Sequence record: MT133560.1
Length of the DNA stretch: 64,000 nt
Strand: one strand, 5' to 3'
The notes under the pieces were generated by a model. It made no database searches. It saw nothing but the letters and a program-made list of their open reading frames with translations, and was not told the DNA's origin. Positions 57,564-60,456 of the stretch are shown piece after piece (the stretch's first letter is position 1; each line of letters begins with the position of its first letter). The translations under genes were made by a program, and so were the position numbers.

Positions 57564-59807
57564 ATGAGCGTACATGCCCTAAGAGAACTGTTTAAACACA
57601 AAGGCGAAAAGAAATACGAAGTCTTCTCAATGGAAGATTTCATTGGCCGCCTAGAAAGTGAAATTGGTCTAAATGACAGCGTTGTTAGTCAAGGTCGTTC
57701 CCTTGTTAGCACCATTTCACATGAAAACTTCGGTACCGTACAAGCTACCGACGTTCAAGATGCTGCTGCAATTTATAACAAAATGCAAATGCTCGTTAAC
57801 GACTATGGTTTCGAACGAGTAAGTTCCAGTGATCCTCAAGTACGCGCTCGTGAAGAACGTGTTCGTGAGAACCAGATCACTGCTGCTACCATGGCTGCTA
57901 TCGCCTGTGCTGATGAAACTAAATATATCCGTGCACTACGTGGTATTACCAAAGCTAAAGCTTCTAATGAAGATCATGTTAAGGTTGTACAGCATCAGTT
58001 CAATGGCCCCGCTGGTGGCATTCAAGTATTCGAAAATGGTGTTGGTCTAGAGAACTATAACGAGAAGTCACAGCGTGATTTCCGTGTTGTAACTATTGGT
58101 TATAACCTAGCTGCTAGCCGTCAGGATGAATTCGCTGAGCGTATCTATCCGACCACCGTTATCAACCCGATTGAAGGTGGTGTTGTTCAGGTTCTTCCTT
58201 ACATCGCTGTAATGAAAGACGTTTACCACGAAGTATCCGGCGTTAAGATGGATAACGAAGAAGTGAACATGGTAGAAGCCTATCGTGATCCTTCCATCCT
58301 CGACGATGAAAGCATTGCGCTAATTCCTGCCCTAGATCCGGCTGGTTCCAATGCTGACTTCTTCGTAGACCCGGCTCTTGTTCCTCCGTACACCATCAAG
58401 AACGAGCAGAACCTAACTATCACTACTGCTCCGCTAAAAGCGAACGTACGTCTTGATCTAATGGGTAACTCCAATGCTAACCTACTCATCCAGCGTGGCA
58501 TGCTTGAAGTTTCTGACACCATTGATCCGGCTGGTCGTCTAAAGAACCTATTCGTTCTACTCGGCGGTAAAGTTGTTAAGTTCAAGGTTGACCGTCTACC
58601 TCGCGCTGTGTTCCAGCCCGATCTAGTTGGTGATACCCGGAACGCTGTTATCCGTTTCGATAGCGATGATCTAGTTGTTAGTGGCGATACCACTTTCATC
58701 GATGGTTCAGCTGACGGTGTTATCAATGATCTTAAGACCGCTAAACTAAGCCTACGTCTAAGCGTTGGTTTTGGTGGTACTATCAGCCTATCCAAAGGCG
58801 ATTCTAAGTTTGGTGCTACCGACACTTACGTCGATAAAGTTCTAAACGAAGATGGTCAGGTAATGGATAATGCTGACCCGGCTGTTAAAGCTATTCTAGA
58901 TCAGCTAACTGACCTAGCTGTTATCGGTTTCGAACTAGACACTCGCTTCACCAACACTAACCGTCGTCAGCGTGGTCACCTACTACAGACCCGTGCACTA
59001 CAGTTCCGTCATCCGATCCCGATGCACGCTCCTGTAACTCTACCGATGGACACCATGACCGATGAAGGTCCGGGTGAGGTTGTTAAAGCTCTAACTGTTA
59101 ACACCAACATCCGTAACAGCAACAACGCTGTTAAGCGCATGCTTAACTACCTTGCTCAACTACGTGAAGTTGTACACAATGGTTACAACCGTCCGAAGTT
59201 TGGTATCATCGAAGGCGCACTATCCGCTGTAATGCGTCCGACCTATCGTTACAAAGAACTAGATCTTGAGAAAGTCATCGACACCATCAAGTCTAAAGAT
59301 CGTTGGGACGACGTTTGCGCTGCGATCCTAAACTGTGTTAAAGCTGAGCTATTCCCGGCTCACCGTGATTCCAACATTGAAGCTGCCTTCCGTGTTATCT
59401 CCGGTAACCAGGATGAAACTCCGATGTATCTCTTCTGCTCCGACAAAGAGATTGCTAACTATCTAATGACTAAAGGTGACGACCGTACTCTAGGTGCTTA
59501 TCTCAAGTACGATATCGTTTCCACCAACAACCAGCTATTTGATGGTAAGCTAGTTGTAATTCCGACCCGCGCAGTACAACAAGAAAACGACATCCTCTCC
59601 TGGGGTCAGTTCTTCTACGTATCTACTGTTATCGCTGACCTACCGATCACTCGTGGTGGTCACCAGGTTACTCGCGAAATCGCGGCCATTCCGTTCAACC
59701 TACACGTCAACAACATTCCGTTCGCGCTAGAGTTCAAGATCACTGGCTTCCAGAAAGTCATGGGTGAAACTCAGTTCAACGGTAAGCTTGCTGATCTTAA
59801 GCCGTGA
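57564..59807 (+). CDS. Major capsid protein (gp120)
   Basis: 747 aa, strongly biased high-expression codon usage, G-L-E protease site ending at residue 163; length and position match recalled phiKZ gp120. Confidence 0.93.
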   Translation: MSVHALRELFKHKGEKKYEVFSMEDFIGRLESEIGLNDSVVSQGRSLVSTISHENFGTVQATDVQDAAAIYNKMQMLVNDYGFERVSSSDPQVRAREERVRENQITAATMAAIACADETKYIRALRGITKAKASNEDHVKVVQHQFNGPAGGIQVFENGVGLENYNEKSQRDFRVVTIGYNLAASRQDEFAERIYPTTVINPIEGGVVQVLPYIAVMKDVYHEVSGVKMDNEEVNMVEAYRDPSILDDESIALIPALDPAGSNADFFVDPALVPPYTIKNEQNLTITTAPLKANVRLDLMGNSNANLLIQRGMLEVSDTIDPAGRLKNLFVLLGGKVVKFKVDRLPRAVFQPDLVGDTRNAVIRFDSDDLVVSGDTTFIDGSADGVINDLKTAKLSLRLSVGFGGTISLSKGDSKFGATDTYVDKVLNEDGQVMDNADPAVKAILDQLTDLAVIGFELDTRFTNTNRRQRGHLLQTRALQFRHPIPMHAPVTLPMDTMTDEGPGEVVKALTVNTNIRNSNNAVKRMLNYLAQLREVVHNGYNRPKFGIIEGALSAVMRPTYRYKELDLEKVIDTIKSKDRWDDVCAAILNCVKAELFPAHRDSNIEAAFRVISGNQDETPMYLFCSDKEIANYLMTKGDDRTLGAYLKYDIVSTNNQLFDGKLVVIPTRAVQQENDILSWGQFFYVSTVIADLPITRGGHQVTREIAAIPFNLHVNNIPFALEFKITGFQKVMGETQFNGKLADLKP

Positions 59808-59888
59808 GCTGGAAAGGGTTACCGTTATCTAGAAAATGGGACTATCCGTTATTTGGAAGACGGTAATGCCCGGAAGTTAGAAGAGTAA
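59808..59888 (+). CDS. In-frame 26-aa extension after the capsid UGA (AGKGYRYLENGTIRYLEDGNARKLEE), candidate readthrough domain
   Basis: Same frame as the capsid gene, no own start, internal RYLE[ND]G repeat, overlaps a long RNA hairpin, and lies inside the transcript before the terminator. Confidence 0.6.
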   Translation, partial: AGKGYRYLENGTIRYLEDGNARKLEE

Positions 59889-59892
59889 CAGA

Positions 59893-59925
59893 CATAGGCC
59901 CTCCCTTCGGGGAGGGCTTTATGTT
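59893..59925 (+). terminator. CATA...TATG-flanked hairpin ending the capsid transcript
   Basis: CATAG-GCCCTCCC-TTC-GGGAGGGC-TTTATG. Confidence 0.8.
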
Positions 59926-59943
59926 GTATTACATTAAAAAAAG

Positions 59944-59960
59944 TTTAAGATCTATATTAC
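59944..59960 (+). promoter_or_regulatory. Early promoter
   Basis: TTTAAGATC-TATATTAC. Confidence 0.7.
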
Positions 59961-60003
59961 AGTAATGATCATGATCTTCTAATTTAAAAATAGGTTAATC
60001 CAA

Positions 60004-60456
60004 ATGAACGTTCAATTATTTCCAGAAGTCATCGAAAGATGGCAGGATGCCCTGAGGGTATCTCTTATAGAAAAAAATACCATGGTAGATAATAAGATGT
60101 CTACCGTAGATGATGATAAATACATTAATACTTTCTTTGAAGAATTCCATCCTGTTCAGGATGCCTTTATGCCCAAAGGGCTAGAGGACTTTATTACAGA
60201 TTATGCCAAGAAAAACACTGAGGAGATCCCTCAAGAAAAACAGTTTAAGCGGGCCACCGAAAAGTTATATTGTTCGAGTGACCCGCATAAATGGCAGAAG
60301 TCAAGTAATAAGGAAAAGAGTGAATCCTTTAAGGGAAGGTCCGTACATCAAACTAAAAAGAGGCTCCCCAACATTGTAGATTTGGAGGCCGTTGTGATTA
60401 AGGTAGATTTCAATGGTAACACTAAAAATTGCGGGGCTTACTCAAGTATCAGTTAA
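60004..60456 (+). CDS. Hypothetical protein (gp121-like)
   Basis: 150-aa ORF, AGGT SD. Confidence 0.7.
   Translation: MNVQLFPEVIERWQDALRVSLIEKNTMVDNKMSTVDDDKYINTFFEEFHPVQDAFMPKGLEDFITDYAKKNTEEIPQEKQFKRATEKLYCSSDPHKWQKSSNKEKSESFKGRSVHQTKKRLPNIVDLEAVVIKVDFNGNTKNCGAYSSIS

Follow-up and report, generated by a model that had tools for sequence, protein, structure and literature searches.

The major capsid protein gene of phiKZ-type phages ends in a TGA codon which is followed, in the same frame, by a short open coding stretch and a pronounced hairpin, and the question raised by this locus is whether the stop is leaky, giving a minor extended capsid isoform, and whether the hairpin is a selected part of the signal. 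The DNA analysed here (the window) is a stretch of 64,000 nucleotides from record MT133560.1, which belongs to a phiKZ-type phage, being 100% identical to phage fnug and 99.4% to phiKZ over 701 nt. On comparative sequence evidence, without protein-level data, a small share of the capsid subunits probably carries an extra 26-residue tail that has not been reported, while the hairpin looks like a side-effect of how that tail is encoded.

The 3′ end of the capsid gene

The 747-codon capsid open reading frame ends in TGA, and the same frame then reads AGKGYRYLENGTIRYLEDGNARKLEE up to a TAA codon. The features of the region are as follows:
57564–59804 (+), major capsid protein gene (phiKZ gp120), 747 sense codons, with 99–100% identity to annotated major head/capsid genes of phiKZ-type phages
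59805–59807 (+), TGA stop of the capsid gene, the proposed leaky stop, with G as the next base
59808–59822 (+), variable Gly/Lys-rich linker codons (A-G-K-G-Y), differing between clades (xGKG/RNPG) and holding 3-nt indels
59823–59846 (+), repeat unit 1, R-Y-L-E-N-G-T-I
59847–59870 (+), repeat unit 2, R-Y-L-E-D-G-N-A
59871–59885 (+), truncated repeat unit 3, R-K-L-E-E, the C-terminus of the proposed extended isoform
59886–59888 (+), second stop (TAA), ending the extension
59816–59871 (+), RNA hairpin, preceded by an 8-nt spacer (59808–59815) and judged a by-product of the repeat coding
59896–59929 (+), intrinsic terminator (GC stem 59896–59919 plus T-rich tail), closing the capsid transcript after the extension

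The hairpin showed a minimum free energy (MFE) of −24.7 kcal/mol, with about 22 pairs (five of them G-U) and a 6-nt loop, and scored z = −5.4 against dinucleotide shuffles, none of 200 shuffles folding as well. The initial annotation, which described the TGA, the spacer, the hairpin and the 26-codon extension from the sequence alone, was therefore accurate as an observation, and the fold is far better than base composition alone would give. The terminator, conserved across five genera, lies after the second stop, so the extension is on the capsid mRNA.

Conservation of the stop, the frame and the repeat motif

To test whether the extension frame holds in relatives, a condition named beforehand as one that could refute readthrough, the capsid gene 3′ ends of related phages were compared. 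The TGA, the open frame and the motif were conserved in all 22 distinct extension-bearing relatives, namely phiKZ, PhiPA3, PS119XW, Phabio, 201phi2-1, Psa21, Noxifer and 15 metagenomic lineages, from seven or more genera with capsid C-terminal identity down to about 61%. The extension comprised 24–30 open codons in all of them. The first stop was always TGA, although TGA accounts for only about 20% of stops on long ORFs of the phiKZ genome (53 of 260), whereas the second stop varied among TAA, TGA and TAG. In eight phiKZ-type genomes the GAG codon at 59883–59885 is TAG, which ends the peptide exactly at ...RKLE. The base following the first TGA was a purine in 21 of 22 lineages.

The extension frame contained 0 stops in 491 codons, against 29 and 22 in the other forward frames and 12–30 in the reverse frames, with about 22 expected from composition. 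All 25 internal gaps of a frame-blind nucleotide alignment were 3 nt long. The pN/pS ratio was 0.64 in frame, against 0.84 and 1.02 out of frame; this value is only moderately low, and the linker part is poorly conserved. The invariant Arg, Glu and Gly columns were encoded by 2–4 synonymous codons, including both CGN and AGR for Arg, and the Arg column of repeat unit 2 used CGT, CGG, AGG and AGA.

The eight loci (six distinct sequences) lacking the extension all ended the capsid gene in TAA. The tree needs at least three independent losses of the extension, each coinciding with TAA, and the extension is dispensable in at least three lineages. In one lineage (L054) a deletion of roughly 57 nt left an out-of-frame remnant.

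The peptide is a short linker plus three RxLE[D/N]G units, and it fits the motif definition of two or more tandem 8-residue units R-x-[LYT]-E-[DNS]-G-x-x followed by R-x-L-E. In the alignment R, E, G and G were invariant and R, E, L and E near-invariant. It aligned in register, including its C-terminal end, with the genuine C-termini of homologues of virion protein gp143 in seven genera, and these two were the only copies of the motif in the phiKZ genome. The family of phiKZ gp143, 201phi2-1 gp228 and PhiPA3 gp162 (PHROG 2935, virion structural protein; “lysis regulator” in PMC12894885) carries the same three-unit motif, ending 0–2 residues after the last L-E, and co-occurs with the capsid extension in the same 69 Pseudomonas phage records. 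In gp143, however, the tail is an ordinary part of the ORF, appended to a 150-residue globular protein whose fold resembles a phiKZ baseplate-periphery protein, gp143 itself not being in the PDB, whereas in the capsid gene the tail lies behind a stop codon.

A profile of the motif found 65 proteins at E ≤ 1e−3, many with the motif at the extreme C-terminus of phage tail and fibre proteins. The profile scored the window peptide at 53.9 bits, although this is circular because the peptide is part of the profile. The capsid extension ended 0–3 residues after the last L-E in most lineages, as in gp143 homologues and many database hits. No Pfam match was obtained with the 26-aa peptide, a PDB profile search with the tail motif gave nothing below E = 0.8, and a literature search for the motif strings returned only noise. 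The genomic context of two database hits led nowhere, one (P0019) being a free-standing 61-aa gene and the other (P0017) not being in frame with its upstream gene. AlphaFold models of the tail alone (pLDDT 62) and of gp143 (tail pLDDT about 58) were too uncertain to give a structure, and suggest only short strands around the EDG turns and a flexible appended tail.

A proposed minor capsid isoform

These data are best explained by occasional readthrough of the capsid UGA, a reading in which we have fair confidence. In this view, most ribosomes translating the very abundant late capsid mRNA terminate at UGA 59805–59807 and make the 747-aa gp120, whereas a small fraction decode the UGA and continue for 26 codons to UAA 59886–59888. 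Decoding would most likely be by a near-cognate host tRNA, since ARAGORN on the window and on the remainder of the phiKZ genome found seven tRNAs (Thr, two Asn, Asp, Met, Pro and Leu) and no suppressor with a UCA anticodon. The product would be a 774-aa isoform ending in a short flexible linker plus three RxLE[D/N]G units, which probably form short beta-strands joined by NG/DG turns. In the solved phiKZ capsid (PMC11297242) the C-terminal arm of the capsid protein is modelled to residue 747, and the arms meet on the capsomer axis, forming a six-helix bundle in hexons and reaching the outer protein gp244 in pentons; the tail would therefore emerge at capsomer centres. With about 1,615 subunits per head, 1–3% readthrough would give roughly 15–50 tails. 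Since the same tail is the natural C-terminus of gp143 (also described as a holin regulator) and of many unrelated phage tail, fibre and cement proteins, it is most likely a portable docking or adhesion tag. What the comparison itself demonstrates is the conservation of the stop, the frame and the motif, together with the homology; that translation occurs, its frequency, the decoding tRNA and the function of the tag are inferred. The published phiKZ proteomics and cryo-EM papers that were read do not mention an extended isoform, although the capsid has been solved at 3.5 Å and the virion proteome catalogued several times.

The interpretation given in the initial annotation was thus only partly supported: its central inference, a minor 774-aa isoform made by UGA readthrough and carrying a repeat tag, passes the conservation test named there and is supported by the comparative data, which strongly support a translated extension, whereas its proposal that the hairpin is a selected, readthrough-stimulating structure was not supported.

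If confirmed, this would be, to our knowledge, the first UGA-readthrough capsid extension in a tailed dsDNA phage; phiKZ is the reference jumbo, nucleus-forming phage. In Q-beta (Allolevivirus) a leaky UGA at the end of the coat gene is occasionally read through to give the A1 protein, a minor extended coat isoform built into the capsid; Q-beta, however, is a small ssRNA phage whose extension is a folded domain of about 196 aa needed for infectivity, whereas here the phage is a 280-kb tailed dsDNA phage and the extension is a 24–30-aa repeat tag, dispensable in some lineages and shared with other virion proteins. In T7 (capsid protein 10B), Listeria phages A118/PSA and other tailed phages, including those with Ig-like domains added by programmed frameshift, a minor C-terminally extended isoform of a major structural protein is likewise produced by recoding and displayed on the virion surface, but by −1 or +1 frameshifting at slippery sites into another frame, while here the extension is in frame behind a stop and no slippery site is needed. 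Each head would carry tens of copies of a surface tag that symmetry-averaged cryo-EM cannot see, the capsid would be linked to gp143 and to a widespread, uncatalogued tail motif of phage fibre and tail proteins without known function, and a natural low-copy display site would be offered for engineering phiKZ-type capsids.

A more speculative reading, unlikely but not excluded, is that the RxLE[D/N]G tail is a portable C-terminal docking tag used by many phages, and that the capsid readthrough fraction and gp143 compete for, or share, one binding partner. This would couple capsid accumulation or virion assembly to lysis timing or to capsid trafficking and docking, with the readthrough level setting the dose. 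A related possibility is that capsid-gene UGA readthrough is a general display platform in this lineage, as contig L028 has replaced the tag with an in-frame Ig-like (Big_2) domain behind a retained TGA, while its closest relative uses TAA.

The hairpin and other readings of the region

Among the alternatives, the one ranked marginally highest, although unlikely, is that readthrough occurs and the long hairpin 8 nt downstream of the UGA is its selected stimulator. The hairpin and spacer exist in phiKZ, and every lineage has some stable local structure after the stop (MFE −23 to −34 kcal/mol). Composition is, however, the wrong null here. When the 26 codons were re-drawn synonymously using capsid-gene codon usage, the mean MFE was already −22 to −24 kcal/mol, and the native sequence was only z = −1.0 to −1.5, with 8–15% of recodings folding as well; across lineages z was mostly between −1.5 and +0.8. 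The coding DNA of the gp143 tail, lying inside an ORF where no readthrough is needed, forms the same inner hairpin. Stem positions and spacing from the UGA are not conserved, and the RNAalifold consensus is only 8 pairs at −7 kcal/mol, built from conserved Arg and Asp-Gly codons, so that the G-U richness taken in the initial annotation as typical of selected structure carries no independent weight. The hairpin is mainly a consequence of encoding the repeats: Arg codons preceded by C (CCGN) pair with Asp-Gly codons (GACGG), and CUAGA is self-complementary. MuLV gag-pol and alphavirus signals also have a stop codon, a short spacer and a downstream RNA structure, to which phiKZ corresponds at least formally, but they act on eukaryotic ribosomes and their structures are conserved with covariation; structure-stimulated readthrough is established for eukaryote-infecting viruses and has not been established for bacterial ribosomes. 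The case is also a caution, as a striking hairpin with z = −5.4 can be produced purely by a repeated peptide coding sequence.

It is likewise unlikely that the stretch is an untranslated 3′ UTR element, for example an mRNA-stabilising or processing hairpin ahead of the terminator, which resembles coding sequence only incidentally. Besides the strong fold in phiKZ, a 5-bp CCGU/ACGG stem is kept in 16–18 of 18 sequences, two pairs show double changes, the third base of the codon before each Arg is C in 15–18 of 19 sequences whatever the amino acid, and two lineages (L027 and L025) fold better than 97–100% of synonymous recodings. Some RNA-level constraint therefore cannot be excluded. The architecture of the MFE fold nevertheless differs between lineages, only the 5-bp core being shared, the covariation term of the consensus is −0.8, and most lineages fold no better than recoded controls. 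An Rfam scan of 59700–60010 at E ≤ 10 gave only weak terminator-like and leader-like hits, with no SECIS or readthrough element. An RNA element does not explain the absence of stops in one frame only, the 3-nt indels, the CGN/AGR exchange at an invariant Arg, the in-register match to real protein C-termini or the TGA-to-TAA switch on loss.

That the extension is a decaying, untranslated relic of a longer capsid C-terminus cut off by a nonsense mutation is very unlikely. It has been lost several times without obvious harm, but the TGA is at the same position on both sides of the midpoint root of the tree, and the motif has been kept while the capsid C-terminus diverged to about 61% identity and the extension itself to about 40–50%. 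A relic would have accumulated stops and frameshifts, and none is seen; when the extension is lost, it goes by deletion and the stop changes to TAA.

Selenocysteine insertion, already ranked as the less likely alternative in the initial annotation, is the weakest reading, since, although the apical loop starts about 33 nt after the stop codon and begins with G, which fits loose bacterial SECIS descriptors, hairpin architecture and loop are not conserved among relatives that keep the UGA and the peptide, neither the Rfam scan nor the phage tRNA search revealed a SECIS or a tRNA-Sec, and the low capacity of the Sec pathway would fit poorly with the most abundant late mRNA.

An independent small ORF or reinitiation was rejected, as there is no conserved in-frame ATG, GTG or TTG after the TGA, an in-frame ATG occurring only in two lineages, inside repeat 1. 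An opposite-strand gene was rejected from the stops in the reverse frames. The “hypothetical protein” annotated over the region in HPP-Temi is an out-of-frame overlapping call and is not relevant. The Goslar capsid gene also ends in TGA-A with 28 open codons, but that peptide has no motif and no relative anywhere else in the phage collection, and is probably due to chance.

The 3' end of the capsid gene and its relatives

The sequence analyzed belongs to a phiKZ-type Pseudomonas phage, being 100% identical to phage fnug and 99.4% identical to phiKZ over 701 nt. Inspection of the region confirmed the following features:

57564-59807, major capsid protein gene (gp120) of 747 codons, ending in TGA
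in-frame continuation after this TGA, AGKGYRYLENGTIRYLEDGNARKLEE, to TAA at 59886-59888
59816-59871, long hairpin starting 8 nt after the capsid stop codon (MFE -24.7 kcal/mol; z = -5.4 against dinucleotide shuffles)
59896-59919, GC-rich intrinsic terminator

Thus, the initial annotation of this region, describing an open frame and a long hairpin behind the capsid stop codon, was accurate.

A blastn search showed that the similarity to phages of other genera does not stop at the TGA but runs about 160 nt further. The corresponding regions of phiKZ, PS119XW (Pawinskivirus), Phabio, 201phi2-1 (Serwervirus), and Psa21 (Tepukevirus) were aligned, and all of them were found to keep the TGA, an open frame of 26-28 codons, indels in multiples of three, and a peptide of the form xGKGxFRxLEDGTxRYLEDGxARxLE. 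A scan of IMG/VR with a capsid C-terminal profile added 26 loci, a metagenome scan added seven, and the Noxifer and HPP-Temi sequences were retrieved separately. Every one of the 22 distinct sequences with the extension ends the capsid gene in TGA, followed by 24-30 open codons with the motif, whereas the second stop is TAA, TGA or TAG. Eight loci (six distinct sequences) without the extension all end in TAA. Among 47 phiKZ-type genomes the only variation seen in the extension was a natural G-to-T polymorphism at position 59883, converting the last extension codon (GAG in the sequence analyzed) to TAG in MZ444140 and seven other phiKZ-type genomes (locus L062, 136-138), so that the peptide ends exactly at ...RKLE, the conserved end of the motif.

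Several independent lines of evidence indicated that the stretch is coding. Across 18 unique extension sequences the capsid frame contains 0 stops in 491 codons, while the other forward frames contain 29 and 22, the reverse frames 12-30, and about 22 are expected from composition. A nucleotide alignment made without reference to any frame showed 25 internal gaps, all of them 3 nt long. The pN/pS ratio was 0.64 in frame, as compared with 0.84 and 1.02 in the shifted frames. In addition, the invariant Arg, Glu and Gly columns are written with two to four synonymous codons, as exemplified by one Arg column using CGT, CGG, AGG and AGA. No start codon is conserved after the TGA, so that a separate peptide is not a consistent reading.

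A maximum-likelihood tree of the capsid C-terminal regions placed extension-bearing lineages on both sides of the midpoint root and requires at least three losses of the extension: in the group of capsid loci L029-L035, in locus L056, and in locus L054, which is nested among near-identical extension-bearing sequences. Each loss coincides with a change from TGA to TAA, and in L054 a deletion of about 57 nt removed the extension and left an out-of-frame remnant of its last codons. In the phiKZ genome TGA accounts for only 53 of 260 stops on long ORFs, while TAA accounts for 177. A weak stop kept only where something useful lies behind it is the signature expected of functional readthrough.

In IMG/VR contig 3300043122_000192 (L028, 2533-3147), from a clade whose other members end the capsid gene in TAA with no extension, the TGA-A is kept and is followed in frame by a 203-codon ORF with a Big_2 Ig-like domain (E = 4e-9). 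Since this ORF also has its own ATG 6 nt after the stop and an AAGGG just upstream, it could be either a readthrough-displayed Ig domain or a coupled separate decoration gene. The major capsid gene of Escherichia phage Goslar (L049, 986-1075) ends in TGA-A followed by 28 open in-frame codons (TTVAASLDDILDDNVADGFIAPDIHPAP) and then TGA, but this peptide has no RxLEDG motif and no similar sequence in any other phage record, and therefore it is probably due to chance.

A C-terminal motif shared with gp143

A tblastn search with the 26 residues also hit the C-termini of annotated virion structural proteins in Phabio and Noxifer. The phiKZ homologue is gp143 (phiKZ locus L009, 21694-22227, outside the sequence analyzed), which ends ...IRLLENGAARYLENGQIRYLES. 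The gp143 homologues in seven genera all end in three such units, usually ...RELEH, and align in register with the capsid extensions, including the position of the C-terminus. They occur in 69 phage records, all from Pseudomonas phages of the same genera as the 69 records that matched the 3' end of the capsid gene. A six-frame profile search of the whole phiKZ genome found exactly two copies of the motif, the capsid extension and the gp143 tail.

The gp143 protein is reported as a virion protein and, more recently, as a regulator of the gp142 holin (PMC12894885). Its globular part was confidently modelled by AlphaFold (pLDDT 80-94), while the tail was of low confidence and appended. The predicted fold of the globular part resembles a 150-residue chain of the outer peripheral region of the phiKZ baseplate (PDB 9xqd chain 0; Foldseek E = 4.5e-7, TM 0.58/0.67, 19% identity), and a weak match to Pfam DUF7941, below the curated threshold, was also found. 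On the basis of this model gp143, described as a holin regulator, thus belongs to a virion structural fold family.

A profile of the tail searched against 1.84 billion representative proteins gave 65 hits at E<=1e-3. In these proteins tandem RxLE[D/S/N]G units form an uncatalogued motif found mostly at the extreme C-terminus of small proteins and of proteins assigned to phage tail-fibre, minor-tail, fn3-bearing major-tail and cement-domain families, and some proteins carry 4-9 copies. No Pfam family or solved structure covers the motif.

RNA structure and decoding of the UGA

The initial annotation also proposed the hairpin as a selected structure stimulating readthrough. Dinucleotide shuffling is the wrong control for a repeat-coding sequence, and therefore the 26 codons were redrawn synonymously with capsid-gene codon usage. 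The recoded sequences already folded to a mean of -22 to -24 kcal/mol, and the native phiKZ sequence was then at z = -1.0 to -1.5, with 8-15% of the recodings folding as well. Most other lineages were found between z = -1.3 and +0.8, and only lineages L027 (-2.9) and L025 (-1.7) stood out. The cause is visible in the codons, since Arg codons preceded by a C-ending codon (CCGN) pair with Asp-Gly (GACGG), and Leu-Glu written as CUAGA is self-complementary. Furthermore, the gp143 tail lies inside an ORF, where no readthrough is needed, yet its DNA forms the same inner hairpin. RNAalifold over 18 lineages left only 8 pairs, with a consensus energy of -7.0 kcal/mol and a covariation term of -0.8. 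A residual RNA-level constraint cannot be excluded, since the codon preceding each conserved Arg (59820-59822, 59844-59846 and 59868-59870) ends in C in 15-18 of 19 lineages whatever amino acid it encodes (NNC-CGN), suggesting either a codon-pair preference or weak RNA-level selection for CCG/CGG pairing, and two pairs show double changes. Even so, the long G-U-rich hairpin is not independent evidence of a selected structure.

The sequence analyzed and the remainder of the phiKZ genome encode seven tRNAs (Thr, two Asn, Asp, Met, Pro and Leu), none of which is a suppressor, Sec or Trp tRNA. No SECIS or other Rfam family matched, and the hairpin that a SECIS would need is not conserved. Near-cognate decoding of UGA by a host tRNA is therefore the simplest mechanism. 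UGA is the leakiest bacterial stop and is the one used by Q-beta. The base after the stop is a purine in 21 of 22 lineages.

The inferred capsid isoform and the downstream region

The main interpretation of the initial annotation, a minor readthrough capsid isoform with a repeat tag, is strongly supported by the comparative evidence, although still without protein evidence, whereas its proposal of the hairpin as a stimulator and the less favoured selenocysteine alternative are not supported; overall, that interpretation was partly supported. What the analysis shows is thus the conservation of the TGA, of the frame and of the motif shared with gp143, while production of the isoform, the way in which the UGA is decoded and the number of tails per head are inferred. 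Full-text literature searches on phiKZ in connection with readthrough or ribosome profiling, and on stop-codon readthrough of major capsid proteins, found no paper describing an extended gp120 isoform, and none of the capsid, whole-virion, transposon, transcriptome and proteomics papers examined mentions it. The closest known system is the Q-beta A1 readthrough protein, and functionally the proposed isoform also resembles the frameshift-extended capsid and tail isoforms of tailed phages. Leaky-stop extension of a coat protein is thus already known, and the additional interest here lies in the uncatalogued RxLE[D/N]G tail shared with gp143.

In the 3.5 A phiKZ capsid structure the C-terminal arm of the capsid protein (residues 728-747) is modelled to the last residue; the six arms of a hexon form a central six-helix bundle around a 9 A pore, and in pentons the arm reaches the junction of two outer gp244 subunits (PMC11297242). 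A flexible 27-residue addition on a few percent of subunits would emerge at capsomer centres and would be invisible after icosahedral averaging. With about 1,615 subunits per head, 1-3% readthrough would mean roughly 15-50 tails, a figure that is inferred.

Just downstream of the capsid terminator and upstream of gene 121, the motif TCTATATTAC at 59951-59960 (within the A/T-rich stretch 59930-59965), preceded by an A-run, is nearly invariant in the alignment of five genera. It looks like the phiKZ-type early promoter consensus, although a sigma-70 scan found nothing there. The blastn search with the 701-nt query (59400-60100) gave 2-6 separate matching places per phiKZ-type genome, and therefore some short part of it, probably the terminator or the promoter-like stretch, is repeated elsewhere in the genome.
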